A stretch of DNA of 64,000 nt from Ascidiella aspersa (lineage: Eukaryota). Shown here piece by piece: positions 4,636 to 37,578 of the stretch (its first letter is position 1; every line of letters begins with the position of its first letter). The notes under the pieces are model-generated. The model was not told the origin of the DNA. It did no database searches and was given only the letters and a program-made list of their open reading frames with translations. The stretch is from positions 38,254,001 to 38,318,000 of the forward strand of contig OZ004608.1 of the NCBI GenBank assembly GCA_963924565.1, read 5' to 3'. Made by a program: the position numbers and the translations under genes.

Positions 4636-5411
4636 GATGTTAAAAAACAAAACGTTATACAAGTATAGGCTAAATGTAGAGTTAAAATTTATCTAAAACC
4701 TAAAAGTTTGGCAAAAAAATGCTAAGTTTAACATACAAACAGAAACAACATTTATGAGTGTAGAACTGTGTCAATTCACAAATTGACACAGTTCGTCAAG
4801 GGATAACCCAGTTAGGTCCCGAGGTCTGGTTAAGCAGATGTGATTTGAGTTTAACATACAAATGTAGATATAACTAGACGGGGTTGCGGTTGTTGTATAT
4901 TTTGTCAGGGGTAATTTTCAGGGCCTTATTTTTAAGTGTGAATTGTGAAGGTAATTGGGTCATTATAAATAGGATTATTTACGCAACATATTACAAGCAA
5001 ATTGTTTTTTGTGCAAAAATTTCGATATATAACCCAAAATTTTAAATACAAATAACTACTTCATTTCAACCCATGCATTTATTCAAAAGATTTAAGTCAA
5101 GTCACGTAATTTTGCCCAAAACGCTTAAGTCAAATCAAGTCATTTAAAAACAGTCACTTAAGTACACTTAAGTTAAGTGTTGACTTAAGTCATTAAACAA
5201 CACTGATCCCTAGCGGTTATCATGACAATGTTAAAGGTAATGACTTTGGTGTCAATTTCAAACAAAAATTGGGAAATGTTATGCTTTATGTTGTACAGCT
5301 TGATTGAAAGTGGAACAACTCCTGTAAAGTAAACCAGAAAAGTACTCATCAAGCAAACAGCTAAATGTCTATTTGTTTATATTAAAAAATTATAGCTTAT
5401 GAGAGATTGCG

Positions 5412-8400
5412 ATGACTGATGTTCGTGGACTTAATAAAAGTTTTTTCAATTCTAAAGAAGGCGTATTTGAAACAATTCAACTGGTAAGAATTTTTTCGTA
5501 TTGTAGGCCTATGTGAATCTTTTTCCTATTGCTTCTACTTCGTGCATTTTAATTGTTTTCACTTCTACTTTAACCTAATACGAAAGCTTGTCGAGAATTG
5601 AACACAATTTGCCTTTATATGGCACCACCTTATTACGGTACTCTAGTTAGAATTAGACAAATACGGCCATTTACAAAGATTTGTACTGTTAGTTACTTTA
5701 ATTTAGGTTCAAAACCATGACCTACAGGTTTATTATGTGGAGTCTGTGTGAAGACATATGCATTTAAAACAAGTTGCAATACACAGTTTAACTAATTGAA
5801 GCTGTATGGCAAAAGTAACTGTCAATTCAGTTTGTCCCATCCGTTTCATATTTAAAACGCTAAAACATAAACCACGATTAGTTAATGAAAGAAATTGTAA
5901 CGTCAACAAATACTAAAGTATTTAACGGATAAACTAAAACATTAAAGCCCATACAAAAGTAGGTAGCATTTTAAACGTTTCAAATCAATCATAAGATAAT
6001 GGTTGGGAGTTTTAGTTAGACGTAGAATGAATATCAAAGCTCATACAGAAGTAGGTATAGCATTTTGAGAACGTAGTGCCTTCTCACTAAGCTGAAAATA
6101 AAAAAAAGATTTATTCAAATGCTAAATCTAGCTCTGTATGGGCTTTGATAATCGTACTACGTCTTACTCCAGCAATTAAGCTCCTAAACTAAAATAAATT
6201 TTGAATTTAGGTGCTGAGTCTTATGATTCTAATTCTGTGTTTATCGAGCTCATTTTGGTCGGTGGAGGGCGCCAATGCAATGAACGCTGTCCTTGTATTT
6301 TCTCTGCTTTGTTTCCTCATCCGAATACTAAGTTGGATTGTCTACTATTACCAGCTTAACAACGCATCAACCATTGAGCTAAAACTATGGCACACCTTTG
6401 TAAGTACTTGTCTTAAACTAAGGAAATCACAACAGGTACAATGAAAGATACATACAAACACACACACGTGTTCAACAACTGTGATCAAACCCTTCTGAAG
6501 CTGCTTTTTGACAAACGTTTACGGCTTACGTACCTAAGTACACCGAAAGCCATTGCACACTCCCCGAATTTATCGAACAATAATGCAAGCAAGGCAGGCT
6601 AGAAAACAGGAAGCCTGCAGTGTGGTTCGAACTCACTACCTCGGACATACCAAGACCGTCGCTCTACTAACTGAGCTACAAAGGTTCAGAGGGAGTTTTG
6701 CTTTATTAAAAAATCTTTACAAGAATAAATGTTTAGTGTTGCATAGTTAACCTACGGAAAGTATAATCCGGGGATTGCGATAAATCCTTTTTGTCGGGTT
6801 GTTCGATTTTATAAATTTCTAAGCCAAAAAAGGTCATCATTTCAATTAAGATGATTTGAACTTATTAACTAGAAATGTGTATTTTATACAATCTTAAAAT
6901 GCACAATCGTAATTATTTAAGAGAACAATTGAAACGTCTTAATCAAGATGGTGTCGATACACTCAATCTTTTTGGCTTTGCAATTTATTATAAAGCTACA
7001 TTACAGATCCGTGCATGGTGTACCCAAGCTTCATCAAGGCGTTTTTTTAGGAAACATATTTTGGAATTCTTGGTGGTTCATTGATGTTTATCAACATGTG
7101 CATTTCGGCTGACATGGCGAATCATTTTAAACACTACGAACAATTGCCAGCAAACTTCCATGGTTTATTGACTTCTTGTGCGGTAAGTTGGCCATCAATA
7201 CATTCAAGTAGAATAGTAGTGACGGGATGGTTTGGTGGAAAAATAACAACAGGTTCGGCGCACCAGCGAAAATTACTTTACCAAACACTCTGTTTTTACT
7301 TTTACTTCTGCAACTCGGCAAGTTGTTCGTTTAGCACTTGATATTATTGTCAAATGAGGAATTATTTAAACCACAACTTTCAAACGAATACTTGTCATGA
7401 CTAGGGCGATTATTTTTTGACCTAAAATAATTTATTTTGACAAAAATTTGACCTGTTAGAAATACATTGATTTAAATAATCTAGGCGTCGTTGTTTACAC
7501 ATTTTTTATACTGTGTATTGTTCTAATGAAGATATAATACAGTTGAAATGACTTTGAATATAAATCAAAACTAATTTTTTTTGATACTTGAACGATAAAT
7601 TGCAAAATAACTGAACGACCACTTTCAAAAAGCTGACTTTAGTTTTTTTCTAATTTGTTAACGATTTATGTGCATTTCATTCAATTTTGAATTAAAAAAA
7701 TTTTAACAAATTTTGACCTAACGTGTAAATGTTGACAAAATTTTGACTTTTTTTGACAAGTCAAAAAATAATCGCCCTAGTCATAACCAAACCGCTTATT
7801 AAACCTGTTCGTTCGAAACAGAATAAGTTGACCAGAAGAGGTTTACTCAGTATTTTAATGATGAATTCCTAGTTTTTGCTCAACTTAGCTATCTTTTCTT
7901 CATTTTCAGGTGTTTTCAGCGCCTGTGACGTTGGTCTTCTTTGCTTATAGTTTACTACTTACTCAAGAAAACAAAGTGACCAGCTCCGCAATAAACGTAC
8001 CAGTAAATACAGTTATTGTTGTTAAACACACCTTATTTGGTTAGTTATATAAAAGGGCGTTTTTACGCGTGTTAAGGACTGCAAATTTACAATAACACTT
8101 GGGTATACGATCTATATGTACATTTTGAATTAACGTCTCGGTTGAGTAATTTGTAAAACCACTCAAGTCCAAGTCAAGTCTCAGTCAAGTGATAATTCGA
8201 CCAAGTCAATTCCTAGTCAAGTCCTTGTCAAAAAATCGTTAAACTATTAAAATTAGTACAATCGACCGAATACGAGCAAAAACGCAACTAAAAAATAATG
8301 TAAACGCATCATATAGCAAGCAAATTGTTGTGTAAACAGTTAGATAAATGACTCTACAAAAAATTCAATACAAAAAAATGTGCTTAATGAATCCTCTGTA

Positions 8401-11400
8401 TTTCAACCCAAGTCATTTGTCCAAAAGATTTAAGTCAATGCCCAAAAGTCAAGTCAAGTAATTTTGCCAAAAGGACTTTAAGTTAATTTATTTAAAAAAT
8501 GTGACTTAAGTGCACAAGGGAACACTGATTCTGAGTTTGGTACTTCGCACCTCGTACTGTGGACTGTGGAAGCTTCGAATAGTCTTACTCTAGAGTCTAG
8601 AGTCCTATTTAAAGCAGGTATCCGACTTCGCCGAGTCCCGAATCCAGATACGAAAGTCGAAGTTTGCTTTTTTCATCTCTGGGTTCACGAGGCAACTGTT
8701 GGGTGGCCGTTTTTTCTTAATTATTAATATTGCAATAGCCAAAAAAAAGACTTTCCCAGATAACAATCGCTGCGTTGTTTGTAAAGTATGGCTGAAATTT
8801 CTTTAACAACTCGATATCGGATCGGCACCGATACCGATACCACCCTAGTATCGGGCAAGGACGGACAATATTACTTGGTATCGGGTATCGGCCACGGTCC
8901 GATATTACACTTGTAATACCCAAGCGGACTTGACTACCAAACTCCTCCCATTAATGAAAGGCCATACCTGGCCGCCGACTTTGTATTTTACACTTGAGAT
9001 ACCTAATGGGTTTTATGTTTCTTGTATTTAATTAATGCTACAATAGCATCTTTATCATTTGTTAGAAGGGTTTAATGAGAAAATTTAAAGAAAATAATTT
9101 AAATAAAATAAAAATCACAACATGTCAACATTGCACTCCAAAATGAAATCACAAAAACTGCAAGAATTTGTGATGACGTTTATTTGCACGAAGCCCCCAA
9201 TAACCGCCTAAATCAAATCAATAGTGTCAATACCGGTAATATGCTGATGCCGAGAAAAAGTTATAAGTATGCACAGCATGGTCGTTTCATTTTCTAAGTC
9301 ACATAAACGTTAACAACAATTCCTATAAAACACTGTTGTAATAAATAGTCACAGTGACACTAATATGCACGAAATTTCTGTCAAGTGACCCTTCGGGTAC
9401 ACGGACACCTGTTTGATAAACACTATGTACATAACAACACAGGTTTCGACCTATGTTAAGACCTATGTCCAGAGCCCGATGTACATCGGCGTCACAGTTC
9501 TTCAGGGGAGTATTATGTCAGCCAATTGTGATGCAATAGTCAACTCGACGCAATATTTTGACATGTCAGGTGTGTGAATACTGTTTTAAACTGATTTTTG
9601 TAAAAAGATTTAATTGCCATCATTATTCGGTTGAGATAATGTTGAGCTCTTTTATTCGTTAACCTCCAGCCGAAATTGGAAAACTGCTTGTGGCCAAAGG
9701 TGGTCAAAGTATTGCTGATGATTGCGCCAACAACCCACTGTACAGGTCAGCCAGCCTTCGTATCACTAATGCTGGTACTTTGTCGTACAAGTACATCTTT
9801 CATCTGCATGTGACCAGTGATGTAACTTGGCTTGAAAATACGTTGCGGGAAATGTTAAAGGAAGCTGAGGAACGTGGAGTTAGATCGCTCGCAATGCCTC
9901 CAGTTGGAACAGGTAGACGATAAGTGTTAGGCGAAATATTTTTGATAATCATTTGCAAAGCCATAAAGGTCAACTAGAACGACATCGTCTTGAAGTTGTA
10001 ATACGAGCTTGCATCATCTTCAGTTAATGTGACTGAATAAAAGGGGTGGTTGTTAGCAATATCTACTCGATCCTTTTGGCTTTGCAATTCGTTATCAAGC
10101 AACATTACAGATTCGTATACAGTGTACAAAAGGATTTTTGTTTCACAAATATGTTAAATTGTGTGTATGGAGCTGTAAGCTATTACAGTAGACTGCTTTT
10201 AAAAAATAAATATTTCCTAATATTAACTCTTATTTAAACACTTTTTATTGCTTTACTTAGGCGGCATTGGATTACAAGCCCAGGAGGCCGCTACATGCAT
10301 CAGAAAAGCCATAATCAGATTTGAACATACAATTCCCAACTATCTGCAAAGCATCTCGATTTATGTGTTTCAACAAGCAATGGTGGCAACATTTAAACAG
10401 GAGTTCCCACCATCGCGAAATCATGTCTTTGGTTCAGGTTAAAAATTTTTGTACAAGAGGCTAATTATACTTTCAAGTAGCATTTCGCCCAGTAAACCAT
10501 CTTACAAATTGGCAACAACACTGAACCTATGAATTCAGTTATACACTTATATTTCCGTTTACTGTACCTTGGCGAACATTTCTACTCGATTCATTATTTT
10601 GCTTCACCCAATCCTCTTTTTATATTTTATACAGTTTATCCTCACCTTCGACTTAAACGCCCGTTTACACAACAGTTGCGCTGAGCTGAGCTAAGCGTAA
10701 TTTGCATTTAATTTCTATTGTTTCGAGATTTTCACGCTTTGCTCAAACTCAAGGCCCGCGCAGCTATAGAAAAACGTTACGTGTTCGAGCGGCTTTTCCA
10801 CTCAGCTCAGCGCAGCTGTAGTGTTAACGGGCCTTAAAACTTGATTTGAAATGTTTTTTAGGTCTTCCATCCCACTGGGAGAGCATGGAAGGACAACTTA
10901 AACGAGTAAATCTTCTAAAAACCTCTCAGGAATACCAACATGTTCTGGCACTCTTCAATAACACTCTTCGAAAAAATGTTTCAAAGGTATGTTGAAAGAA
11001 TTTAATGGTTACTTCACTCCTATATTATTGCTATTTTAACCTCTTTAAAAGTAAATCCGCTTACATTTTAATGGTTGTCAGATTGAACGCATCCAAAACC
11101 CAACACTCTACAAACAATATCAAGCCCAAAAAGTAAAGGTTACTGACGTAATAGCTGGATGTAGATCAATTATAACAAGAGAATTATTTCATGGAACCGA
11201 TGCTAGTAAATGTGATAGCATTTGTAACCAAGGCTTCGATAAAGGTCATTCTGGCGTTAATGGTAAGTCAAACAAAATGTTAACATCTGAACAATATTTT
11301 ACGACCAAAAGTTGTGTTTTTATGTAAATTATAGCTGCTAGACACAATCGTATTTAATATGCTAAAATTTGTTAATCAAAAGAGTCTCTAAATACCACTT

Positions 11401-11733
11401 ATTACAAAACATATTCAATAACTCTGTGTATAAACTTTACTCGAGATGTATTTTATATCCATCTCTTCAGGTACTGTGCATGGGAAAGGTGTGTACTTCG
11501 CTACAACTGCCAAACATTCGAATTCATATGCAAAAGGAAACCCCAAGCATATGTTTCTGGCTGAAGTTATAACTGGAGAATATTGCAGAGGCAATTCTTC
11601 TATGAATGTTGCCCCGAATCAACCAAATGGCTCGCCTTATGATAGCGTTGTAGACAACATGGCAAACCCATCTATGTTTGTTGTGTTTAAAGATACAAGC
11701 GTTTATCCCGCTTACCTTGTAATTTACAATTAG
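5412..11733 (+). CDS. MARVEL-like 4TM + macrodomain + PARP14/15-like ART fusion, paralog 1 (10 exons, 523 aa as modelled)
   Basis: Exons 5412-5483, 6211-6399, 7051-7182, 7910-8002, 9473-9569, 9670-9912, 10261-10437, 10862-10986, 11082-11262, 11471-11733. All are GT-AG and phase-compatible (1572 nt). The N-terminus FFNSKEGVFETIQLVLSLMILILCL plus four hydrophobic segments resembles MARVEL/CMTM. Macro motifs: VTVLQGSIMSANCDAIVNST and AMPPVGTGGIG. ART motifs: LPSHW, IERIQNP, LFHGT, GKGVYFA, YDSVVD and FVVFKDTSVYPAYLV. The 8002-to-9473 junction is inferred. Confidence 0.75.
6458..6692 (-). mobile_element. tRNA-derived SINE, near full length
   Basis: The reverse strand has an A-box-like tagctcagttagtagagc, a B-box-like gttcgaacc, a conserved body and a (TG)n tail. 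It is homologous to 22434-22810, 23981-24335 and 29857-30023. Confidence 0.75.
7402..7779. mobile_element. hAT-type MITE
   Basis: TIRs tagggcgattatttttt / aaaaaataatcgcccta, with TSD gtcatgac / gtcataac. Confidence 0.85.
9473..11733 (+). CDS. Macrodomain-PARP catalytic region of paralog 1 (secure whether or not fused to the upstream TM exons)
   Basis: Six phase-compatible exons carry macro and PARP14/15-type catalytic motifs. An in-frame ATG at 9479 could serve as an alternative start. Confidence 0.92.
10653..10837. mobile_element. Palindromic MITE (PIF/Harbinger-like)
   Basis: Long TIRs gcccgtttacacaacagttgcgctgagctgag / ctcagctcagcgcagctgtagtgttaacgggc, flanked by ttaa. Confidence 0.65.
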
Positions 11734-11894
11734 TTTTGACAAATATGTACAACAATGTAATCTAATTTTTTTACCACGTGCGCAGGTGGCCAAAAATTTT
11801 TATTTGAGCTTTAAAACAGTGCACAAAGTGCACAAATTTTGAAACTTAAAATCGTCTAAGGGAGTTTAGCGAAAGAGGTTTTGTTCTTTAACTA

Positions 11895-12000
11895 TTAACC
11901 CACTAATATCTTTTAACCCACTAATATCTTTTAACCCACTAATATATTTTAACCCACTAATATCTTTTAACCCACTAATATCTTTTAACCCACTAATATC
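11895..12000. repeat. 19-bp minisatellite (ttaacccactaatatcttt), ~5.5 copies
   Basis: Direct tandem units visible. Confidence 0.95.
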
Positions 12001-12205
12001 CGCGGCAGATGATTTATCTATACACTTTTGCTTTCTAGACATATAACCTTTATTAACCGTTCAGACATGACATATGTATTTCTTCTAATGTAATTTACCT
12101 AAGCTTGTTTTTTTCATTTTTTATCGCACTTTTTGCTAAAATAAAAGGTATTTTGTAGTTTTAGTTACACATAGTTTAAATAAACTCATTTAGTCGCTTT
12201 TTTCG

Positions 12206-12590
12206 TACGTAGTTTATATAAAACTTATTTAGTCACTTTTTGTACTCATATACGTAGTTTATATAAAACTTGTTTAGTCACTTTTTGTACTCATATACGT
12301 AGTTTATATAAAACTTATTTAGTCACTTTTTGTACTCATATACGTAGTTTATATAAAACTTATTTAGTCACTTTTTGTATTCATATACGTAGTTTATATA
12401 AAACTTATTTAGTCACTTTTTGTACTCATATACCTAGTTTATATAAAACTTATTTAGTCACTTTTTGTATTCATATACGTAGTTTATATAAAACTTATTT
12501 AGTCACTTTTTGTATTCATGTACGTAGTTTATATAAAACTTATTTAGTCACTTTTTGTATTCATATACGTAGTTTATATAAAACTTATTT
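12206..12590. repeat. 45-bp minisatellite, ~8.5 copies
   Basis: Unit tacgtagtttatataaaacttatttagtcactttttgtactcata, with no unique spacers. Confidence 0.95.
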
Positions 12591-15510
12591 GAGAATTCTT
12601 TGCTTGCATGTAGCTTAAACATAACTAATGAGAAAAGTATTTGTTACTGAAAGTGTTATATTTCAATATTGTTGACAAATAAGGATCATGTGGATTACAT
12701 AAGACGTTTTGCGTTCGAAATTTGTCAAAACAAACATTTCAATTGTTTTACATTTTAATCTAGTTGCGCATTTTCTTGAAAAAAAAGAAATATTAAATAA
12801 TTAATTCATTACATTTTTTTACTCTTTTTTTTAATTTTTTCGCCGTGCAAAAAAAATCGCGATTGCCGTTGAAAGTTGTTTTGTTTAAAAAATAGGTTGA
12901 CCAAATGTTAAGTCCAAGGCAGGATAAAGTATGACGTAATGCTTAATGCAGCTACTCGCAACGATAAAAATTGTTTAAATAAGATTATGTATTTTTCAGT
13001 CGTATGTTGACATAGGAGAAAAATGATACATTACGTCATACCTTATCCTGACTAATTTGGTCAAAGAATTTTCCGTTTTGTGTCGTTCTAACGGTTTAGC
13101 AATAAACTATTTCACAAAACAAAAAGTAGGCTATTATAAAAGCAAGATGTCTAAATACTCGATCTAGAAAATTTGTCTCTTTTTAAAAGTTTTCACCTTA
13201 CAGAGCATAATATGAAATAATTACGAAATAACTTGACTTGACTTAATTGCCCTTGTTTATTTTTAAAGCCATTTAAAAATTACTTATTTACAACACTAAT
13301 AGAAACATCCAAAAGCAATACATTGACGCATATTTGACAATAAAAAACATCAGAAATTTAATGTCCTGGGACCTAGCCTACAGTACCTCAATAGAAACGT
13401 ACAAAAACAAAAAGACAATTCATGACGAGACTTAGACGAGCATTTTAGTATCCAAACTTCACTTCAATCAACCTTATCGAAACTCGTTTATTTATAGTTT
13501 ATCTGGTGCTTTAAACAACCACCAGGGTCATTTTTGCACCTTGCTGGGGTACAACTTTCAATCTTGACTGAAAAATAATATATCTGAAATTAAGCAAACA
13601 TTTAATTACTTAATCCGCATTGTGCCGCAGCATTTTAAAGCAAACATTAATTGCTTGCTTTTCAACTTCAAATCAGGTTAATCATTGTACATTCTCACAC
13701 TGTGATATGTTGTTGCCTGGAAACCAAAGAAGCATAGCCCATGCTGGGAAATAAACTGGTAATAAGCCTAAGTTTATTGAAGTTTTATTTTGAATAAGGA
13801 TAGTTTAGTCGATTTATTTTGTTAAGGCAGACTATTACGCATGATTGAATTTGTAAGACCTATAATATCTCAGCTATACAGTTGAAATAGCTGGAAAAGA
13901 AGTTTGTCAAAAAACAAAGTTCTGACTTTATTTTGGAAACACTTATGTCATCAGATTGACAGAACTTATCTCTTTACAATACGTTAAAGCCAGGGCTTCA
14001 CTTTGTAGCTCATTCAAACAAACTAACTAAAACATTATTCACATGTGTGTAGAGAACTGTGGTCTAGCCCAAGAAGTCACCCAACTAATTCTGCCGGCCC
14101 GGGAAATAAATGTAAATAACTTCAGTTGAAATGTGGTCGGATTCTTGACTAAGTTTTATTAAAAATTTAACTAAACGACATTTTCACAAAACTCAGTACA
14201 GTTTATGCTAACTAAACAGTCAATTTCCTTCATTAACGATAAGCTCAAGTTAATAAAGTTTGAAGCAAAATTTCTTATCCAGCCCGCCATTATGAATTTT
14301 TAAGGTTATTAAGTCCATGAGGTAAATAAAAAGTTTGGTGACCATGCACTGGGTCTAGTCCTTTAAGAAGTCATTGTTATCAACGAAACTACAGCAAACA
14401 TACAAATAGTACAGCGAGTTCACGGGTGCCTGGTTTAGTACAGGCATGGTATAGTTAGAAAGGGTTGCACTAAAAACCCTTAAAGCAAAATGTTAGGTTT
14501 AGTATTCTTTTCGGCAAAATTCTAGCTTGAATAAATCCATTGCTTCACAATGCCGTATTGTTACAAGGTACAACTAATATTAATAAGAGGTTAGATTTTG
14601 CAGTGTTTGCTCAATACGTAAATTATATTAGGTTAGAAAACATTATTACTTTTAAGATTGACAAGATTATGCAGCGATTTATTCACACATAAGCTTCGCG
14701 AATAAACTTAAAGGTTTGAACAGTTTCTCCGCATTTTCAAATATCATAAAGTCTCTAGATATTTCGTGTCAGTGTACAAAAAAGCTTATGCCCTGCGTCA
14801 TAAAGTTCGATTGATATTAGGAACACTGCTTTAAGTTGAACAGATAAAACTGAAAACAAGTGGCAATGTAGTTACTTTGTAGGTCTGTTTATAACTTTAT
14901 AATGACAGAATTCCTAAATGTGTTGTATCAATCGCCTTTTTCTTGTGTCTGCTTATATGATTGTATCTACTCTTTTGGTGAGAGACCTCTCTGTCAATCA
15001 ACAGAGACCGCTCTGTCACTTGCTAAGGCCAGATCTCTCTGGTCTCCGTTTATTTCCCTTGACCTTTTGTTTTGGAATAAACTTTACAAGCGAACAGTAA
15101 CATATAGTAGTCGGCAATGTGGTTTATAATATGTCCTACAGCAATGCTGACAAACAGTATTTACCTGTTGATGAGTTTTTAGTTTACACAAACGTGCTTC
15201 ATCAGGAGTAAGAACTATTATTTTATATCATCTGTGTAAGCATTTGTCACATTGACGTAACTGAAATTATTGGCGCAAAGTTCACCTACTTTTCTTCTTC
15301 TGAACGATTCTTGCTCTGACCTGATGAAGCACGGTTGTGCAAAAGCTTGTCAACATTACTTAATAATTATTAAAAGTGACATTACTTTTTAATTGTTTAA
15401 ATAAGACAAATACGGCTATCAATCAAGATTAAAACAGATAATTTTCCATCTCCAGCAAACAGCTTATTTTGTTTAATATATTTCAATGTAAAAACGTTAA
15501 AGAGATTGTT

Positions 15511-18500
15511 ATGTCTGGTGCTGGACCGGATAAAAGTTTCTTTACATCTAAAGATGGTGTATATAAAACTATTCAACTGGTGAGATTTTTATTATTGTTG
15601 GTTAATTTAATTTAATTTCAAAACCATAAATGAGTTAATGTTTGTGATTTTTGTATACCCTAGTACTAGTGCGGTGCTTCCCAGTGTTGTAAACAAGTCA
15701 TTTTAAAATGAATTAAGTCCCACTCAAGTTATTTGCAAAATAACTTAAGTCCAAGTCAAGTCTTTTTGAACAAATACCAAGTGAAGTCCCAATCCAAGCC
15801 ATCAGTTGCGCAAGTCAAATCCCAGTCAAGTCATAATTAAAGTCAACTTCAAGTCACGTCCTTGTCATAAAAATAAAGCGTTAAGCTATACGAATTTTTA
15901 AACTAGCATGATTATGAACAATAACTGAACTAAAAACTAACGAAAACGGAACATATAGCAAGCAATTTGTTTTTTGTCCAAAAATTTGGACAAATAGCTC
16001 AATTGTTTAAAAAAATACTTCAAGTCATTAAAAACAGTGACTTAAGTGCCTTAAGTCAAGTGATTGACTTAAGTCATTACAACACTGGTGCTTCCCAACC
16101 AGTGATGGGTCGCGAAGCTATTTCTGAGTGTTACAGTTTTCTAGTAGATCGGGAAATGAATGCATTACCATTAGGTAGCATTTATGCAAGAATATCACAA
16201 ATAGCTAACAATTAGATGTGTTGTGTCGCAATAACTATTTCAGTAGGCTACGTACGGTACGCCACTAGTAAAGATGCAGGTTTTATGTAACTTTATTTGT
16301 GTGGTCATATCTTATTGTAGGTCACTCACAAAACTTGCTGTAAATATGGGTCGCGAACTGAGGTTGGGAAGCACTGCCCTAGTGTAATATGACTCGGTCT
16401 GGGATTTGACTTTCCAGTTGTCAAAAATTAATTGGAATTAAGTTAATATACAAATGGCTTGACTTGCTACTTGTTGAAAATGACCTGACTTGGACCAAAG
16501 TTGTTTGCAAATGACCTGACTTTATTTTAAAAATGACTCTTTTCCAACACTACAGTGCAATTTATATGCATTTTAAACAACGTGAGACATAATCGCACGT
16601 TGGTTAACAGTTGGGATGTCCGATAGTATCGGATCGGAGCCGATACCCGATGCCGAGTTACAGTAGCAGTATTTGTCCAATACTAGGTTGGTATCGCTGC
16701 CAATCCGATGTCAAGGTAATACAGGAACCCTGAATCGTAAATTTGACAAAAAGGTTAAATAACTGAAGGAAAGAAAACTTCTTAGGGTTGGTGGAAATTT
16801 TGACTAAATAACCTAAAACCTTTCCACCTTTTTTGCTTGTTTAGTGATGACATCGTTTAGTAACTGTTCACATCGTGATATTTTTTCCAAAATATAATTA
16901 TTAAGTTTAAGGACATCCTCCCTAGTTTACGGTCATGCTTTACTTATAATATACTCGATTACATAAAGCACGTATTCGTAAAATATTACCAAACCTCTGA
17001 AGCAACGAATCGGTTATTAATTTCAACAGGAAACTAAAAAAAACTTTAAATTTCAGGTTCTCAGTCTTTTGGTTCTAATTCTGTGTTTATCGAGCTCATT
17101 TTGGTCGGTGGAGGGCGCCAATGCGATGGGTGCTGTTCTTGCATTTTCCCTGTTTTGCTCGGTCACCATAACATTAAATTGGATTATTAACTTTTGCCAG
17201 CTTTACACCGTAATGAGCTTTAAACCAGAAGCTTGGAAAACCTTAGTAAGTTCATATCTACTATTAAAGAATTTTAAGCCAATAAGGTCATGTAAATCGA
17301 CATCATCTTGGTTAATTCGATACGAACTTGCACCATCTTCAGTTCATGTGACTGACAATTAGTTCAAAGCATCACTTATGAAAGATGGGACGAAATTAAT
17401 CGCAAAGTCGAATAAAACTGAAAACTTTTAGTTTATGTTTCAACGCTCGCTGCCAGAAAAACGCAATTAACAAAGAAAATGAGATTTTTAACGAGTTTAT
17501 ATTGAAAAAGCAGAACGAAGGTTTAGCAGGAAACTTTTTAATCGTGTAAAACCATGAAAAGTGTCACTACACCATTACGTCATATACAGCAACATACGTC
17601 ACAACAAGGATTTGCTTACAATTAATTATATCCCAACTTTTGTGAAGATTAAATTTCTTCTCAGTCACATTAACTAAAGATGATACAAGTTCGTATCGAA
17701 ACGTCTTTATCAAGATGCTGTCGATCTACTCGATCTTTTTGGCTTTGAAATTCATTATAATCCAGCTACATTACAGATCCGTGCATAGTGTAAATATTAA
17801 AGAACAAGTGTTGTTTTTTTCAGTGCCTTTGTTGCTAACTTACCCCCAAATATATGCGAACCGCGTAACATTAAGGCCCTGCGGTCACTGAGAAGATCAG
17901 CATGACACCAACGTCCTATAAAAAAGTTACGCGTTTTACTTAATATGTTCGCCAGCCAGATCTTTGTGTGGGATTTAATTGACCAATTTTGTTTTTTAAA
18001 GAGTTTTTAGGGCCGGATTCCAGTGGTTTAAGTCCCCCATAAAGGTTTTTTTGCCTATGTTAGCTGTAAAATCCTTTAGCGTTCTGCGCGGAATTGCCAC
18101 AATTTTATAGTCGTCATAAAACAAATAACCAACAAAACAATAAAACAAACGAAAGTCAACTTTAATCCAGTCTAATCGCGTTAATCGCGAAAAAATGTGT
18201 TTTTTGTTCAACTTTGCCAAACTTTTAGATTAAAAATTTATGTAACACATTAGACGCATCAATGAGATTCGCATATAGCTCGCATTTATAGTCCAAATTT
18301 GCTTTTTTGTATAGCTTTTTTGCAAAACTTGTTAGTTACTCGGCGTAACATGCTAGAATATGATAGCGCCTTTGAGCTAGATTTTCTTTATACTTTTTGA
18401 AAAAAACATCACGTAAGCCACGTATAAATGGGCTGAATCCCAAACCATTGACATCACCTTTCATTCGATTTAAGTAACTGAATATGCTGTTTTAGGCGAA

Positions 18501-21500
18501 ATATATTTTTCTTTTAACAAAAATTAAGATGCCGTCTTTTACTCGGGTTTAAACTTTAAGTTTTACTTGTTTATAAGCCTGTGTATTAATTTTTCTAAGC
18601 GAATGATTATTCATTGAATTTAAACTAGAGAATAAGTTAAACATAATCAATAGTGTTGTTTCAGGAAGTAAATTACGCCCTGTTTTGTGGTTTATTGATG
18701 GTGTCCAACATGTGCATTTCTGCCATCATGGCCAAGGTGTATAGCAACTTTTCGGGATATTCTGACGAACCATTGCCAGCAAACTTCAAGGGTCTGTTGA
18801 CTTCTTGTGCTGTAAGTTGGCCATCTCTTCTATATTTTTGACCCTTTTTTGTTTGAAAAGGTTGAGCAGTATATATTGTTGCTTTTAATATATGGTTGAT
18901 GTGCTTAAAATGTTTAAGGGCTCTTTTCCTTATTCTTATATGCTCGCAATCCGTCCGTTTGCTCGTAATATTATTCAATACAAGTTATTTTAAACCAGGG
19001 CTGTGTAGTCGGTATCCCGAGTCTGACTTAGATTTCAGAGCACTGTTTTAAACTACAACGTTCTAAAGAATATTGTAACTTTGTTTTTGACAACCTCGTA
19101 AAATAAACCAGTATCACGAACAGCAAAGCTACCCTTGAGGTTTTAGTTTTGCTTTAAAAAAATTAAGGTGTTGTTAAATAGAAATGTATAATTTCGAGTT
19201 TTACCTTTTTGCATGACGTTTTTAGGCGCGAATGTTTTTAATCAGTCATTTTTTCTACCTTCAGGTGTTCTCAGGGTTTGCAATCGTTTTTTTCGACGTT
19301 TATATGTATATTATTCATAAGGACAAACCGATCAGCACTCGGAGGCTTCTAAAGCAAAAACGTCAGAATAATGGTAAGAATTTCAGGATTTTATGCTCCT
19401 CTAGTGCAACCTTTGCCTTATGTCACATTTGCAGATACAACATTTATAAGCGTTAATCGGAAGGGGTTCCACGATGTTGTTTGGGAGCGCATAACATTTA
19501 TTAGAGATGTTAGGTCTTTAAACAGCTTATACTAAATCGCTTGTTGTTATCTAGTGCGCAAATGTCCAGCTGAAATGCAGTCTAGTCACGCGAGGCGTAA
19601 AAAATGGGCTCTTTTTGTTTAAATTGGCAAAACTTTCAATTTAAAGATAAATGGATTAGCATATTGGTTGATATAATGGCACTTACATTCCAATTAAACA
19701 AACTGAACTTGCAAAGTTTACGAGTTCACACGGCGCAACATGGCATATAAGTCTTTCAACTGGACAACATAATAATACTTACTGCAATGGACAAAAACAT
19801 ACTAATAACCAAAAAAAGTTTGCACTTACATAGCAAATTTGACAAAAAATATAGTTTAGGGACTATTGCCCTGGTTTTAACACAGTTTTTCAATTACCAG
19901 CCGCCGGACGAAGTTCAACTAGCCACTCCTTTACCAGAAGTTCAAGAATAGCGCCCATGAGCATGACAATAAACTTATCAGTAAGTGCAGTTAGACAAGC
20001 AGGGTTGCCAGATGGCAAAAATAAAAAAACCAAGCTTACCTTAAAAAGAAGGCAAAAAGCCAAATCTACTACAAACTCATGCTTGAACATTGAATTTCTC
20101 CTTTTGTGGCAATTTTTCTCAATTTTTTTGTCGCTTTTTGCAAAAAAATTTGGCAATTTTTCTCTTTTTGTGATTTTTTTGGCATTTTTTTATTTTGTGT
20201 TAGTTTGATCTCTACTTAACATAACACTAATGAATTTTTCCAATTAAGCCAAAAAAAGCCTAAAATAGCCAAATTTCATTTGGATTTTTTTTGAAAAAGT
20301 AAAATCCAGAGAGGTCCAAAAAAACCTAAATTTTTTAATTTGGCTTTAAACAATCCTAACTGGCAACCCTGTAGACAAGGTCCGATAAATTACTAGTAGT
20401 TTGGCTTAAGACTTAGTACAGTTCACCTGCAGAACAGTATGACCTGGTATTGGTGCGTTTGCCCATTTATGCAACAACCTCGTGTCCTTAGAAAACTAAC
20501 TTGCTACATAACTTTTAAAACGCATTCTTACCATGCGATTTAAAACAACTCGACTCCGACAACCGACCTAGAAAATAAAGTAAATTTCCGGCTCCGTTAA
20601 GCAAACCGATTTATCAATCTCATGTCCATCTCCGACTTTAACGCCATGTATTTCATGTATACTGTCACCACATTCACTTACCCACCCACAGCGTAATGCT
20701 GTTACACCCTTACGGTCTACCATGTGAAGTTTTAATCGATTTCAAGCTTGCTTATGCGCATGTCGGACTCGGCATTCTAGTAGCCTTACGTAGTCTTGCT
20801 CGAGTCCCGATCCGACTTTAGGCAAATAAACCGACTTAATCGAATTCCGAGTCCTGTGTCCGACTTTGAGTCACGGATACCGAGCACTTTGTTTCTTAAC
20901 TGGGACCAGTATCGGCTTAACTGGGACCAGTACCATGGAACATTCCTTACATGTACATTTTATACAAATACTTTTAAAAATGCCATCATGACTTAAATCC
21001 CTTTATAAATTTTGTATTGAATCCGACCCGATATTGTTGGTTAGCCTTGCAATATTCAAGCGATTTAACTTCCAACCTTCTGTCAGTCTCCCAGAAAAAA
21101 TAACAGACTTACTAAACACTTTAGTATAGTTACACCCGAGACACCTTATGGGTTTTATCATTTTTTGTATTTATTAATGTTAAAACAACACAATAATACC
21201 TTCATCATATTTTATACATTGTCAAAATTGCCAAAAAAAATTCAACTAACCTTTCCGTGTAAGCTTGAACCACTGACCAAAGCAATTTTTGTAGAAGTAT
21301 CTTAAAGTTAATACCATTAGACAAAGCTTGTAAAATGCCAAAAAGTCAGTTTAGGAGACTTCAATGCGTATGATTTTTGTTCAAACATTCATACCCAGGG
21401 CCCGATGTACATCGACGTCACAGTTGTTCAGGGGAGTATTATGTCAGCCAATTGTGACGCAATAGTCAACTCGACCAACCAATTCGACATGTCAGGTGGG

Positions 21501-23788
21501 AAGAATGTACATCAAAACTTTAGCCTGGCATGCGATTGCGACAATGTTGAGCTTTTTTATTTGTTCACCTCCAGGTGAAGTTGGAAAGCTGCTTGTAGCC
21601 CAAGGTGGTCAAAGCATTGCTGATGATTGCTCCAACAGCCCACTGTACAGCTCAAACAATCTTCGTATCACCAAAGCTGGTACTCTACCGTACAACTTCA
21701 TATTTCATCTCAACGTGCCCAAAGATGTAAATTCACTTGAAAACGCGTTGCTGGAATTGTTTGAGGAAGCTGATAAACGTGGAGTTAGATTGCTTGCAAT
21801 GCCTACAGTTGGAACAGGTAAGCATTTACATGATAAGCGAAATTAGTTTGCATCGACTAGCTCAGTGGTTCTGAAACTGCTGTCCGCACAACATTCTCTT
21901 ATTAATAGGTTAATAAGTTAGACCGGAGAATTTATTTCGTTTTTCTTTTTAATGTTAACAACTTTGTTGACAGTTTGTCTGAACTAATTATCAGACTAAT
22001 TATCCTACCAGAAAATTTTACTGTATGTCGTTTTAAACATCAAAGGGGTCGTCCTTTATTTGTAAGAAGGTGAAAAGGTGAAAAAGTTGTAGAAGCACTG
22101 GACTAGCTGGTACGCGAAACTCTTAAGATGAGACATTTTAAAAGTGAACATATTCAACTCTATGGCATGATTTGAACACTTTGTTGCTTTACTTAGGCGG
22201 CATTGGATTACAAGCCCAGGAGGTAGCTATCTGCATCAGAGAAGCCATCATCAGATTTGAACAAACCAATTCCAACTATCTGCAAAGCATCTCAATTTAT
22301 GTATTTCAACAAGCAATGTTGGCAACATTTAAACAGGAGTTCCCAACATTGCGTCATGATGTCTCCAATACAGGTTGAAACTTTTGTTTGGTATAAAATG
22401 ATACAATTAAGTGCATCCTGTTCGTAAAACTAACCTGTGGTGAGGTTTGGACTGACGACCTCGGTCATACCAGGACTGTCGCTCTACCAACTGAGCTACA
22501 CAGGCTCAGAAGGGAGAAAACAACAACAGCACTGTTGCCTGCTGCATCTTTTCGGTAAAACTAGTCTGTTGTGAAGTTCGAACTCACAACCTCGGTCATA
22601 GCAGAACCGTCGCCAGGCTCAAAGGGAAGCAAGCTGAAGACAACCATTAAGTCTGCGTAATCTAGGCCTTCTGAAGTCCCAGTTGACCAATTGTTGGTAG
22701 ATCCCGGTATGGCCGGACGTTGTGAGTCCAAAACCCATCACAGACTGCTTGTTTTTCTAGACGGCCTTACTTGCATCATTGATCGACAGAATCGGTGTAT
22801 CTGCAATGGTTTTTACTTTTTTCTTTTGATTCACTAAAAACGTTTCATATTTGACTTAAAATTTCTTAAATGTTTTTTTAGGTCTTCCGTCCCACTGGGA
22901 AAGCATGGAAGGACAACTTTGGAAACGAGTAAAGCTTCCAAGAATCTCGCAGGAATACCAACGAGTTCTGGCACTCTTCAACAAAACTCTTCAAATCAGA
23001 GTTTCTGAAGTATGATAAAATGTTTTAGTGAGCTATTTTACTACGACATTGTTGTTCTGTTTAACTTCTTTTAAAGTAATCTCGCTTATATATATTATGT
23101 GACTTCAGATTGAACGCATCCAAAACCCGACGCTCTGCAGACAATATCAAGCCCAAAAGATAAAGGTTACCGACGTTTTGGGAAAACGTAGGACAATTAT
23201 AACGAGGGAATTATTCCATGGAACTAGCGCTCAATCATGTGACAGCATTTGCAAAGACAACTTTGATAGAGGTCATTCCGGCATTAATGGTGGGTAAAAT
23301 GACAACAAAATCATTTAAAAACATATTTCACTGCAAACAATGAACTGCTGTGTATCTTCTCAAATACATTATGCCCTCCGCTAAATATGCTTAGCTAGTA
23401 TTTGTTTAATTTTGCTACCTTTATATTTTGAAAATGCCCCAGTACCAGTAGACTAAAAATTCATTTTTTTACCCTACATATAAAATAAAAACCTGATAAT
23501 GAGACATTCACATTCTTTTCTCCAGGTACTATGTATGGGAAAGGTACGTACTTTGCTACAACTGCCAAATACTCGGATTCATATGCATCAGGAAATCCTA
23601 AACATATGTTTCTGGCCAAAGTTATAACTGGAGAATACTGCCAGGGCAGCAAGTCTCTGACAGTTGCCCCGAATCAACCAAATGGCTCGCCTTATGATAG
23701 TGTCGTAAATAACATGACAGATCCAACTATGTTCGTTGTGTTTAAAGATACAAGCGTTTACCCAGCTTACCTTGTGATTTACAATTAA
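15511..23788 (+). CDS. MARVEL-like 4TM + macrodomain + PARP14/15-like ART fusion, paralog 2 (11 exons, 560 aa as modelled)
   Basis: Exons 15511-15579, 17057-17245, 18665-18811, 19265-19373, 19901-19980 (alternative in-frame acceptor 19886), 21399-21495, 21575-21817, 22197-22373, 22882-23009, 23109-23289, 23526-23788. All are GT-AG and in phase (1683 nt). Exon sizes match paralog 1 (189, 97, 243, 177, 181, 263). Motifs: QGSIMSANCDAIVNST, PTVGTGGIG, LFHGT and YGKGTYFA. Confidence 0.78.
15672..16376. mobile_element. hAT/Charlie-type MITE interrupted in its left TIR
   Basis: Reconstructed TIR cggtgcttcccaacc / ggttgggaagcactg, with degenerate TSD tactagtg / ccctagtg. Confidence 0.75.
15682..16087. 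mobile_element. hAT-type MITE (aagtc-rich family), nested in another MITE
   Basis: TIRs cagtgttgtaa / ttacaacactg, with perfect 8-bp TSD gtgcttcc. Related fragments occur at ~4985-5206, 8150-8528, 13220-13278, 16390-16552 and 40575-41325. Confidence 0.88.
17272..17790. repeat. Dispersed repeat with long internal inverted repeats and the conserved end gctacattacagatccgtgcatagtg
   Basis: Related copies lie at ~3685-3842, 6805-7023 and 9955-10127. Confidence 0.6.
20000..20371. mobile_element. hAT-type MITE
   Basis: TIRs cagggttgcca / tggcaaccctg, with perfect TSD tagacaag (19992-19999, 20372-20379). Confidence 0.9.
21399..23788 (+). CDS. Macrodomain-PARP catalytic region of paralog 2
   Basis: Six exons homologous to 9473-11733, with an in-frame ATG at 21405. 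Confidence 0.92.
21863..22100. mobile_element. hAT/Charlie-type MITE
   Basis: TIRs cagtggttctgaaact / agttgtagaagcactg, with perfect TSD gactagct. Confidence 0.85.
22434..22812. mobile_element. Cluster of tRNA-derived SINE fragments (two minus-strand heads, one plus-strand copy)
   Basis: Matches to the SINE head (gctctaccaactgagctacacaggc) and body (cttgcatcattgatcgacaga). Confidence 0.7.
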
Positions 23789-23980: not shown

Positions 23981-24335
23981 ACACACACACATGTGTTCCA
24001 TAACTGTGATCTAGCTCTTTTGAAGCTGCTTTTTGGCCAGCGATTACGGCTTACATATCATCAGTACACCGAAAGCCATCGTAGACTCACCGAGTCTGTC
24101 TATCAGTGATGCAAGCAAGACAGGCTAGAAAAACAACCAGCCTGAAGTTAGGCTAGAACTCACGACCGTTTCGACTTGCTTCCCTCTAAGCCTGTGTAAC
24201 TCAGTTGGTAGAGCAACGGTCCCGATATGACCGAGGTCGTGAGGTCGAACCTCACCACAGGCTGGCTGTTTTTTGTTCCTGCCTTGCTTGCATCATTGAT
24301 TAACAAATCCTGTTAGTCTGCGATGGCTTTGGGAA
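23981..24335. mobile_element. Head-to-head pair of tRNA-derived SINEs
   Basis: Minus copy ~23981-24170 has a (CA)n tail. The plus copy starts at 24190 with a cloverleaf-like head at 24190-24262. Confidence 0.78.
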
Positions 24336-33900: not shown

Positions 33901-36900
33901 AGCAAAGGTTTGGCCAACAATTAAAATATATTTACACTTACTGGTGTTGTTATAACAATTCTGCCAAAACGTTTAACTAGTTGTGCAATATATTTTTTTA
34001 TAAAAAAAATAACTTTCATTATAAAATCTTTGGAGCATAATGGTTGGAGGTTGTAGTAAGACGTAATAAGAATATCAAAGCCCATACAGAAGTAGGTTGC
34101 AGTTTGGACTTTTTAATTAATGTTAATAAAGAATAAAGAGTTATTCGAAACGTCCAAAATGATACCTACTTCTGTATGGGCTTTGATAGTCTTATTATAA
34201 AATCACATCGCAAAATGAAAGTAAATTGATTGATCGCAAAACAAATTAACAAAATGTTAAAAAAAGAAAAGCTGTTTTAAAAAAATTGCATAACAAAATA
34301 TATTAGGTTCTAAAAAGTTCTTATTTTAAATTTCAATGTGAAATTAGGTAAACCCGCATTAAAAGGGAAATTGAAATTTAAGTTCAAGTTATTTAACATT
34401 TTTTTATAAAATATTTTTTTATAGTTTTAATGATTTATTCCTGAATGTAAAAATAACTCTTTGATTTTACGACAATAAATTAGATTACTTTAGATGTTAA
34501 AAATGAATAACGAGTTATTCGAAACGTTCAAAATGATATCTACTTCTGTATAGGCTTTAATATTCTTATTACGTCTATTTACAACCTCCAACCATTATGC
34601 TCCATAGATTACATTAGTTTTTTTATATCTTATATTTAGAGCTTTCTATTTAATACTGTTTGTTTTTTAGTACAAAGATAAACTGGAATGTTTGGCCCTT
34701 GTGGTTGACGAATTGTTGAAGAAACATATCCCAGACAAACAGACTTCTTCACCAAAATTGAATCCAGAAAGGCCATCAGCAAGTATTTCCTTAAATATGC
34801 TTTACATTTATCCAAAAATGAACTTTAGCGTTTAAAATTGCTTTGTTTGATTAATTAATTATGTTTTCCACTTACAGATACGCCAGGTACATTTAAAATG
34901 GAAGGCTCTGGAAGCTATTTCAACCAACAAACTACAACTGTGTCAAACAACAGTGACTTTACACTTAAAGATGCAAATGTGGGAGTTCAACATGCTGGTA
35001 GATTAATATTTTGTTGTTCTGTTAATGTGATCTGTTGTGGCTGTGTTCACTATTAAACAAAATGAAAATCATTTTGTCAATTCCCCTTATTGTAGTACCG
35101 TCCATACGGCAGTTGTTTCACACGTTTGGCACTGGAATAGAAAATGTTTCCGTTTTCATTGCATTGCTTTATTTTACTCTAGTTTCAATTTGATGTTTTA
35201 CTTCTACACAATAATTCAGTGATTATTAGTGGCAATAATTACAGAATCTAATACCTATGTGTGGAAAAATAGATTAGTGTTTATTAAGTTTTAACAGTGC
35301 AACAGATATTCCTTGAATCCATAAGTTACCGAAACTGTCATTAAATTCTATTAATTTGAAATGTTACAAATCTTCCTTAATTAACTAGGTTTAACGGAAT
35401 GTGGTTTAATGTTTTGTCCTTTATTTGTGTTATTGTAGCCTATTTACAAACCAAAACAAACTTTCCTAAATATGTGTACTGTAGGTACATCACAACCAGG
35501 AGATTTAGGTGGCAATAGTTCCACAAACCAGAAAGAAAATGATGCTGAAGATCCCAATAATGAAGTGCAAAATACTGGTAATACAAAATTTATGTTATTA
35601 TCTATTCCTAGCCAATCTCAGTATGTGTATTCAAAGGCCAGACTTGTTCTATTACTGTTGAAAATAAATAAAGAGTTATTCTAAACGTTCAAAATGATAT
35701 CTACTTCTGTATGGGCTTTGATATTCTTACTACGTCTTACTACAACCTCCAACCATTATGCTCCAATGTTCTATTACTATTAATTTACACATTTGAGAGC
35801 ATATTTTTTTCATCCTAAACCAAAGTGCGTTGCAATATTTAATTCCAAACCATTAACACTTCATTTTTTTAGAGGACATCATAGTACACCAAAAATTTTC
35901 TCTTTTGGAGATATTTGGAAATGAAGGTACTATACCTAAAAATGATGTATTAAAAGTAAACTTAAAAACTAAACTTAAAAAAAATGAAATGAAATTAAAA
36001 GCTTGATATTGCTAAAAACTAAATGTGTTCCGTTAAAATGATAATACACACTTGCGTTGGCAGAGTTCAATCGTCAGGCTGAGGGCAAAGAAGGGACTCA
36101 GCTTAGTGATGAAGAACTTGCTTGTAAGCTGCTTTTTGCTTTTATTTAGGCGTAAGTAGATAGTGCTCAGTTGACCCTATAAATTTCTGTATCGTCTTTC
36201 GAAACAAAGTTTAAACAGCTTTCGTTTTGCCAGTTTTCAGTTCAACATTTACCAGTGTATATATTTGTTTGTTTTTTTGATATATACACCTATATATTTA
36301 AATGTGCCAGCATTGCAATGACTATACTAGGGGTCATCAAACTGCGTTGCGCTTTCCGTAATAATTTGAATAAAATACCAATAGAACAAAATAACTAGTT
36401 CAACCATTTTCAGCAATCCACTCATAGGAATCTCATATAACACATCCATCCACAATACATGGTTGGAATTATTTCACCATATACTATTCACCTTTATATT
36501 TTACCAGTGGTGAAGTTTGGCGCATGCCGGACTCAGGTCTTGGGTAGATTTATTGGAGACCCGAATCCGTCTTCGCAGCCCTGGAATTAACTACAATTAT
36601 CTTTAAAATTTCATAAACTTTACTTAACTGAACACACATTTTAGAGTGGTTCTTTAGTACAATGACGTTTCCGCACCTGAAACCAAAATCTAAAAGTTAC
36701 TGCTAACATTTTTGGATGTAGTTTAGTTGTGTGGAGATATGGTTTAGTTGTGCGTACCCTATTAAAAATGCCTACTGAAATGCTTTATCCATTAGTTTAA
36801 CATATTTAATTGCAATCGTGTAGATTATGAAAAAATAAGAGATGGAGCGAGACAACTGTTAATTGATTATGAACAGCACTTGGTTGATGAAGAGTTTACC

Positions 36901-37578
36901 AGCGCTTTTCATAAAGAAGCCCTCCTAAGAAAACATATTGAAGATAGAATTACAACAACAGCGGAGGAATTGGAAAACTTTGCGGCTCAGTGTTGCAGTG
37001 AAGACCTACCTCTCCAGGGGATTTTGTTTTATCAATTTGCCGGGAGGTATTATGCTAACGAAAACCAACAGTTTAGCTTTGCTGCAGGGTGCGTTTATAA
37101 AATAAAAGAAATCTGTTTAAAGCAAGTAGTGTCCAGTAATAGATGGGGCCGAACTAGGTTTTTTAAGGAACACGTTATTTTGGTGATGGACGATTTGCGA
37201 AAACTAATCAAGTTAAGCACTTTAAGTGATGTGTCGTCTCGTGTTTGTTATGAGGCGTGGTGTTACTATCATTCTGCACACTGCTTGTGTGAGGTTAAAG
37301 AATGGTCTTTAGCCAGGACCCGGTTAGAAAACGCAATAATGGCAATGGAAAAAGCGCCTGATGTTTGTCAGTATAAAGTGTATGCTTATTTGCACGATTT
37401 ACTCAGTCAGTGTTTTGTCAAATTACAAAATCTTCGAAAAGCCTGCACGCTTTCAAGAATCGCCGCAGAATCATTGCAAAATGCTATCGATTTTGAAGAT
37501 GAACATCAGAAACAAAAAACGGTTCAGAACTTTTACCATCGATTTCATAAACTAAACCAAAAAGTTGCAGGCTTATAA
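27997..37578 (+). CDS. BTB/POZ-BACK protein with coiled-coil/helical insert and C-terminal TPR-like helical domain (14 exons, ~764 aa)
   Basis: Exons 27997-28025, 29232-29400, 31380-31518, 31590-31714, 31959-32102, 32862-32964, 33395-33612, 33734-33907, 34671-34782, 34878-34997, 35485-35577, 35873-35926, 36064-36123, 36824-37578. All are in phase (2295 nt). BTB: LTNFLNEQRK..RCD..VHSNIVCEASPVL..ILDYIYGG. BACK: LKLHCATCLEKYLTDQNC..DFLQL..LFEALHKWW. The last exon has a TPR-like pattern (AWCYYHSAHC..A..LENAI). The start codon and the small exons are less certain. Confidence 0.75.
28078..28493. mobile_element. hAT/Charlie-type MITE
   Basis: Perfect TIRs cagtggttctcaacc / ggttgagaaccactg, with perfect TSD agttagag. 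Confidence 0.92.
29857..30023 (-). mobile_element. tRNA-derived SINE fragment
   Basis: ggtgaggttcgaactgacgacctcggtcataccgggacc..ccaactgagctacacagg matches the family. Confidence 0.72.
34033..34197. repeat. Dispersed ~100-bp repeat family (core aaagcccatacagaagtaggt), here as an inverted pair
   Basis: Other copies lie at ~2887-3050, 5945-6185, 23925-23972, 24340-24512, 32430-32700, 34500-34605, 35665-35765 and 56215-56300. Confidence 0.8.

Follow-up and report, generated by a model that had tools for sequence, protein, structure and literature searches.

The 64,000-nucleotide stretch of the Ascidiella aspersa genome analyzed here (C2:38254001-38318000, hereafter the window) carries two paralogous copies of a candidate gene in which exons for four transmembrane (TM) helices precede exons for a macro domain and a PARP catalytic domain. 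Our analysis suggests, with a probability of roughly 0.7, that each copy is one gene, encoding a four-pass membrane protein whose last helix leads, through a short linker rich in Ser, Thr and Arg, to a single macro domain and a PARP14-like catalytic domain. The two copies probably belong to a lineage-specific, exon-shuffled gene family. A single open reading frame (ORF) running from the membrane exons into the macro-PARP exons had been proposed by a first-pass annotation of the window, and it is upheld by conserved splice phases across diverged paralogs, by the lack of a start codon in exon 5 at several loci, and by a stop codon in exon 4 of stand-alone relatives of the membrane part.

Gene models of the two copies

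The window is AT-rich, with a GC content of about 0.29-0.47, and searches of the species' own genome used the 308.6 Mb assembly. Rebuilding both copies exon by exon recovered uninterrupted joined frames of 523 and 560 residues, as first annotated, and placed all four landmark splice sites exactly where they had been called (donors after 8002 and 19980, acceptors before 9473 and 21399). Copy 1 comprises 10 exons across 5412-11733, with AG/GT at all internal borders and no in-frame stop over 1572 nt (523 residues plus stop). Copy 2 comprises 11 exons across 15511-23788, with canonical sites, compatible phases and an open frame of 1683 nt (560 residues plus stop). Amino-acid identity between the copies ranges from 44 to 80% per exon, and in a DNA alignment of the two the matches are confined to the exons and a few repeats.

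Exons of copy 1:
5412-5483, + strand: exon 1; start codon, with an in-frame TGA 9 nt upstream of the ATG; 24 codons, N-terminus predicted cytosolic; phase-0 GT donor
6211-6399, + strand: exon 2; TM1 and TM2, as two hydrophobic segments; AG/GT borders, phase 0; paralogous matches in the genome
7051-7182, + strand: exon 3; TM3 and the start of TM4; aligned with paralogs
7910-8002, + strand: exon 4; TM4 and a short linker; 93 nt (a multiple of three), phase-0 donor; corresponds to exons 4 and 4b of other copies, merged in frame
9473-9569, + strand: exon 5; first macro strand; phase-0 acceptor; aligns with Ciona P0153 from residue 143
9670-9912, + strand: exon 6; macro core; PF01661 at 36.1 bits; PDB matches including the PARP14 and PARP15 macro domains
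10261-10437, + strand: exon 7; end of the macro domain, from the gene model and the alignment with Ciona P0153
10862-10986, + strand: exon 8; start of the PARP catalytic region
11082-11262, + strand: exon 9; PARP catalytic domain with the triad His; PF00644 at 27.9 bits; best PDB match PARP14
11471-11733, + strand: exon 10; PARP catalytic domain with the triad Tyr, Met as the third residue, and the stop codon; Pfam at 38.3 bits; aligned with PARP12, PARP14, PARP15, ZAP and PARP10

Exons of copy 2:
15511-15579, + strand: exon 1
17057-17245, + strand: exon 2; TM1 and TM2
18665-18811, + strand: exon 3; TM3
19265-19373, + strand: exon 4; TM4 and a basic tail; 109 nt, with a phase-1 donor (G|GTAAG) common to locus F (below)
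19901-19980, + strand: exon 4b; Ser/Thr/Arg-rich linker; 80 nt, phase 1 in and phase 0 out; homologous linker exons in loci F, A, B and D
21399-21495, + strand: exon 5; macro start
21575-21817, + strand: exon 6; macro core
22197-22373, + strand: exon 7
22882-23009, + strand: exon 8
23109-23289, + strand: exon 9; weak GTGGGT donor
23526-23788, + strand: exon 10; ends in the stop codon

Exon 1 of copy 1 is homologous to exon 1 of copy 2, of a dispersed fused locus (F) and of a stand-alone four-helix gene (G). The phase-0 donors at 8002 and 19980 had been described as homologous sites closing the four-helix part of each copy. Their positions and homology stand, the context of the exon 4 donor of copy 1 being homologous to that of the exon 4b donor in copy 2 and locus F, but the four-helix part of copy 2 ends earlier, at the phase-1 donor at 19373, and its phase-0 donor belongs to the separate 80-nt linker exon. 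An alternative acceptor for that linker exon, at 19886, is also compatible with the frame.

Immediately before the start codon both copies carry AGAGATTG (5401-5411 and 15500-15510), which could be a conserved 5' untranslated region or a trans-splice acceptor near the ATG. Two minisatellites lie just 3' of the copy 1 stop, at 11895-12000 (an 18-nt unit repeated 5.9 times) and 12206-12590 (a 45-nt unit repeated 8.6 times), both with 97% matches.

Related loci across the genome

The genome was searched with exons 2, 6 and 10, and all exons were then mapped on the fetched loci. The genes of the window had been regarded as a tandem duplicate pair; two paralogs are indeed present, but they are not isolated, being members of a family of at least eight loci. 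In at least six loci (A, B, D, copies 1 and 2, and F), the macro-PARP exons are preceded, at a distance of 3-7 kb and on the same strand, by membrane exons. Of these fused loci, five sit in a cluster of ~115 kb on C2, and the sixth, locus F, is on C5. Two further genes, G and H, consist of the membrane exons only.

Loci outside the window:
C2:38163001-38176000: locus A; membrane and macro-PARP exons
C2:38175001-38185000: locus B; membrane and macro-PARP exons
C2:38231501-38241500: locus D; membrane and macro-PARP exons
C5:5906501-5915500, - strand: locus F; membrane and macro-PARP exons, open frame
C2:38548001-38558000, - strand: stand-alone four-helix gene G; four exons, only membrane exons
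C5:25990001-26000000, + strand: stand-alone four-helix gene H; four exons, only membrane exons

Genes G and H (~165-170 residues) share the intron positions and phases of the fused copies. Their exon 4 ends in a stop codon after TM4 and a conserved tail, and at this position the fused copies have a donor instead. The membrane part is likely to derive from a gene of this stand-alone type; a word search returned no public relatives of genes G and H. The complementary arrangement is found on C6 and C9, where macro-PARP loci have no membrane exons and instead carry a further macro domain upstream of the exon 5 equivalent, as in Ciona P0153. In these TM-less paralogs the exon 5 acceptor is an internal cis-splice site. 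Similarity of the fused copies to Ciona P0153 begins only at residue 142-143, and a search of the intron between exons 4 and 5 revealed no remnant of a first macro domain.

A maximum-likelihood tree of the last exon, built on 93 columns only, sets the TM-linked copies apart by a branch with support of 83/87 (80% of bootstrap trees), a topology that fits a single fusion event followed by duplication. The ratio of nonsynonymous to synonymous substitution rates (dN/dS) is 0.43-0.68 for the TM exons, the highest value being that between copies 1 and 2, and 0.38 for the macro-PARP exons. Values below 1 in both halves indicate that each is probably under purifying but relaxed selection. Relaxed selection is common in immune gene families with fast turnover (Daugherty et al. 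2014, PMC4038475).

A single gene or two adjacent genes

The junction between the two halves is where a single gene can be told from two neighbors. Exon 4 has a phase-1 donor in copy 2 and loci F, A, B, D and E (lengths of 109, 109, 88, 100, 100 and 88 nt, each leaving a remainder of one on division by three). The linker exon 4b is entered in phase 1 and left in phase 0, at lengths of 80, 101, 77, 101 and 101 nt, each leaving a remainder of two, and exon 5 starts in phase 0 at all loci. Within this otherwise poorly conserved linker, all indels between lineages are multiples of three. Copy 1 lacks the stretch from the middle of exon 4 to the end of exon 4b, and its merged 93-nt exon is in frame and keeps the 4b donor. 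By a rough estimate the phase pattern alone would arise by chance about once in 200-250 cases, which we regard as supportive, not overwhelming.

The distribution of start codons points the same way. In loci A, B, D and F no ATG precedes the macro core within exon 5, and in A and F this exon has none at all; exon 4b has no ATG in A and F, nor does exon 4 of copy 1. At these loci the start of the macro-PARP frame would thus have to come from the membrane exons upstream. As a general rule, a macro-PARP gene with its own start in exon 5 was rejected, as a usable ATG in this exon is missing in four loci. Reading through past the donors yields unconserved tails, and in copy 2 this frame stays free of stops for ~75 codons. 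Overall, the comparative evidence favors one gene, from which we infer transcription as a single mRNA.

Some observations weigh against this reading. The phase argument rests on few independent length variants, and the TM-exon dN/dS of 0.68 between copies 1 and 2 is just mildly below 1. Part of the family looks damaged: locus E, directly upstream of the window, is broken, lacking exons 5 and 6 and having a stop in exon 10; locus C has an inverted fragment at the position of the membrane exons; and in loci B and D the exon 4 donor is GC instead of GT and the tail is acidic. The family thus appears to be turning over, with part of it decaying. In the sole RNA run of the species, of which ~6% was read, depth on exons 2-10 of copy 1 was zero, and among RNA runs up to 2025 none was found that contains the stretch. 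Finally, an ATG two codons into exon 5 (6 nt past the acceptor) is peculiar to copies 1 and 2, which encode Met-Tyr at codons 3-4 where other loci have His/Thr-Ile, so that for these two copies a separately started or trans-spliced soluble macro-PARP is possible.

This last feature is central to the alternative that each copy is two adjacent genes, a four-helix gene and a soluble macro-PARP, perhaps organized like an operon with spliced-leader (SL) trans-splicing at the exon 5 or exon 4b acceptor, the joined frame being a by-product. SL trans-splicing is common in tunicates, the four-helix part alone (~160 residues) is sized like genes G and H, and the partly read RNA run gave no junction reads. 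The same account could draw on an AATAAA hexamer that lies 7-12 nt before the 4b-type donor in copy 1 (7990-7995), copy 2 (19967-19972) and locus F, which may simply encode Ile-Asn or act as a latent poly(A) signal beside the 5' splice site. We nevertheless consider two genes quite improbable: the ATG-less exons 5 and 4b named above would leave the second gene without its start, read-through from the first would meet no nearby stop in copy 2 and only unconserved tails elsewhere, the phases of exons 4 and 4b have been kept through several indels, and the exon 5 acceptor already serves internal cis-splicing in the TM-less paralogs. A milder version, compatible with a real fused gene, holds that copies 1 and 2 also yield shorter products, such as a soluble macro-PARP begun at the exon 5 ATG from an intronic promoter or a spliced leader. 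The Met-Tyr shared by these two copies and the use of SL trans-splicing by tunicates would accommodate it, but this ATG is not conserved beyond them and a stand-alone four-helix product of these loci would have no conserved stop; we judge it unlikely. It is very improbable, lastly, that the fusion arose only for the window copies to fall silent or become pseudogenes within a decaying, unexpressed family. The zero RNA depth on copy 1, the stops, deletions or inversions in locus E, locus C and C2:38200628, and the TM-exon dN/dS would fit such decay, but the RNA view is limited to one partly read sample, the reading frames of copies 1, 2 and F are fully open, with canonical sites and the catalytic His and Tyr retained at a synonymous divergence (dS) of about 0.4-1.0, and the macro-PARP dN/dS is 0.38.

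The reads of the RNA run fell on intronic high-copy repeats only. In two DNA runs that cover the introns, the word depth over several intronic stretches (~5940-6170, 6400-6700, 6800-7200, 7400-7800, 8000-8600, 10000-10200 and 10600-10800) is hundreds of times that of the exons, marking high-copy interspersed repeats. Some of these repeats recur inside the window; 6458-6694, for example, matches 23983-24333 and 22434-22613.

A macro domain and a PARP14/15-like catalytic domain

Domain, structure and public-protein searches used single exons as queries. Exon 6 of copy 1 alone matches Macro (PF01661) at 36.1 bits, against a cut-off of 22, and exons 9 and 10 match PARP (PF00644) at 27.9 and 38.3 bits, against a cut-off of 26.7. 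The PDB matches of the macro core include the bacterial TTHA0132 and the macro domains of PARP14 and PARP15. Among solved structures exon 9 best matches PARP14, with the His motif aligned, and exon 10 matches PARP12, PARP14, ZAP, PARP15 and PARP10. The macro domain and PARP14/15-like catalytic domain of the first-pass annotation are thereby supported. Exons 5-10 are open and phase-compatible in both copies and collinear with the Ciona macro-PARP, which places both domains in one predicted polypeptide. The catalytic and macro parts are ordinary members of the PARP14/15-like clade.

The roles of the residues of the PARP catalytic triad are well established, and a triad of His, Tyr and a hydrophobic residue, in place of H-Y-E, goes with mono-ADP-ribosylation rather than polymer formation. 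Exon 10 keeps the Tyr of the G-x-Y-F-A motif and has a Met aligned to the PARP12 Ile that precedes F-V-I-F, giving an H-Y-Met triad. Because of this triad, the catalytic part is predicted to be a mono-ADP-ribosyltransferase. In the macro domain, the Asp before the IVN motif is present in copies 1 and 2 and in loci F and B. Locus A has Tyr instead (exon 5, ~7147-7240 of the locus A region), and ADP-ribose binding by its macro domain may be lost. Of the glycine-rich loops, copies 1 and 2 keep the second but have a degenerate first one, on account of which we read the macro domain as resembling the binding type rather than the hydrolase type.

Four predicted helices that are not recognizable as MARVEL

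Exons 1-4 encode four hydrophobic segments of 18-28 residues each, and none was found in the macro and PARP exons. The four-helix part had been labeled MARVEL-like, an assignment that every comparison failed to support. Pfam, run exon by exon on exons 1-4 at E<=1, matched no family. The MARVEL hidden Markov model (HMM; PF01284), run over the whole genome at E<=10, matched 15 other places, three of them complete MARVEL frames within a single exon, but none of the TM exons. Alignments of exons 2, 3 and 4, with eight members each, gave hhalign probabilities <6% against four Pfam-validated MARVEL ORFs of the genome. A PDB profile search with the TM exons returned chance-level matches only, a word-indexed protein search with the exon 2 frame of a stand-alone gene returned nothing, and an ESM Atlas search for the four-helix part gave no usable match. 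MARVEL, or any other named family, was rejected for these exons, as no profile or sequence match emerged from the exon-level tests, and the most fitting description of the part is a tetraspan domain, MARVEL-like in layout but unclassified.

MARVEL tetraspans (MAL, CMTM, plasmolipin; PF01284) have ~160 residues, four helices, short loops and cytosolic ends, a layout that the four-helix part would probably share, and we find the flank N-terminal to TM1 reminiscent of theirs. However, no similarity to the four-helix exons was detected by the same HMM that finds other MARVEL genes in this genome, and a four-helix layout with cytosolic ends is common to many tetraspan families. A single-exon frame of 163 residues at C2:38499220-38499615 (- strand), ~50 kb from gene G, is a genuine Pfam MARVEL match (49 bits) and has no detectable similarity to the four-helix exons.

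The tail after TM4 is strongly basic in copy 2 and in loci F, A and E. By the positive-inside rule, this basic tail suggests that the C-terminus is cytosolic, and with four helices the N-terminus would therefore be cytosolic as well. The cytosolic orientation given in the first-pass annotation is consistent with the strongly basic residues that follow TM4 in copy 2 and locus F, and is kept here as a prediction.

Proposed origin and function

We propose that the family arose by exon shuffling in a tunicate-like lineage, when the first four exons of a small stand-alone four-helix gene would have been spliced, via a new linker exon, into a macro-macro-PARP gene. The splice target would have been the internal exon with which the second macro domain begins, so that the first macro domain was replaced. 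The fused gene would then have multiplied, giving the C2 cluster and one dispersed copy on C5. In the resulting protein, the basic residues after TM4 would hold the C-terminus in the cytosol, and the even number of helices the N-terminus too. The enzyme would thus be displayed on the cytosolic face of a membrane, where NAD+ is available, and with its H-Y-Met triad could mono-ADP-ribosylate itself or membrane-proximal targets, while the macro domain would read ADP-ribose. The vertebrate macro-PARPs PARP9, PARP14 and PARP15 are soluble, fast-evolving and linked to immunity. Copy-number turnover and the fairly high dN/dS would fit a comparable role in conflict or immunity for the fused family. 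The first-pass annotation had put forward innate immunity or trafficking as possible roles.

Other genes of the window

Two tandem, apparently intronless genes on the - strand each encode a rhodopsin-type seven-TM receptor preceded by numerous LDL-receptor class A repeats. A further open frame lies on the + strand.

46625-49588, - strand: LDL-receptor class A/seven-TM gene; a single frame of 987 residues
60490-63920, - strand: LDL-receptor class A/seven-TM gene; frames of 429 and 724 residues overlapping by ~30 nt, which implies a frameshift, an intron or an assembly slip
36880-37578, + strand: open frame of 232 residues; no Pfam match

Comparison with known systems

The first-pass annotation had considered the architecture undescribed, and within the scope of our searches it was found in neither the literature nor public proteins. 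No paper was found that describes a four-pass domain ahead of Macro-PARP. A Pfam scan of ten among the 150 best-ranked relatives of the last exon showed no N-terminal membrane domain before Macro-PARP, in a library represented at 50% identity that includes few tunicate genomes and with Pfam itself blind to this TM domain. Of eleven listed relatives of Ciona P0009, three were inspected at the level of single residues, and these had no hydrophobic N-terminus. On balance we lean towards regarding these genes as the first multi-pass (four-helix) membrane-integral macro-PARP family, of the tunicate lineage, formed when exons of a small orphan tetraspan gene took the place of the first macro domain in a PARP14-like gene. 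Such a protein would place an ADP-ribose reader and writer together on the cytosolic face, possibly as a membrane antiviral or self/non-self effector. If so, the family would show that simple exon shuffling is able to relocate the writer/reader module to membranes, and would offer a natural system for asking what membrane-proximal mono-ADP-ribosylation does. One genome would also retain the parts of the event, namely stand-alone four-helix genes, macro-macro-PARP genes and several fused copies, making it a clean example of the birth and expansion of a new architecture.

The vertebrate clade 3 mono-ADP-ribosyltransferases PARP14 and PARP15 resemble the fused copies in having macro domains N-terminal to the catalytic domain, the triad His and Tyr, and a hydrophobic third residue. 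The fused copies differ from them in having one macro domain only, an N-terminal four-helix domain, and Met instead of Leu as the third residue of the triad; exon-level searches detected no WWE, KH or RRM modules in them. Among the matches listed, the closest public relatives are the Ciona macro-(macro)-PARPs H2Z3G6_CIOSA and F6U0A7_CIOIN, which share 63% identity on the last exon and whose collinearity extends from the second macro domain to the C-terminal end of the protein. In these Ciona models, which are partial, macro domains lie upstream and there is no hydrophobic N-terminal domain.

To our knowledge, PARP16 is the sole well-studied membrane PARP. It too is a membrane-bound mono-ADP-ribosyltransferase with a cytosolic catalytic domain (PMC4245714), but it belongs to clade 6, has no macro domain and is held by one C-terminal helix as a tail anchor, whereas the fused copies have four N-terminal helices and a catalytic end. 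A PARP16-type anchor is absent from the fused copies, whose ORF stops at the end of the catalytic domain with no hydrophobic segment in exons 6-10. A sponge PARP12-like protein of clade 3 has been reported to carry a transmembrane domain at its N-terminus (Perina et al. 2014, PMC4245714). It shares with the fused copies a membrane segment ahead of a clade 3 PARP, but no macro or four-pass domain has been described for it and its origin would be independent. Membrane anchoring of clade 3 PARPs thus appears to have arisen elsewhere too, in a form distinct from the four-pass macro-PARP proposed here.

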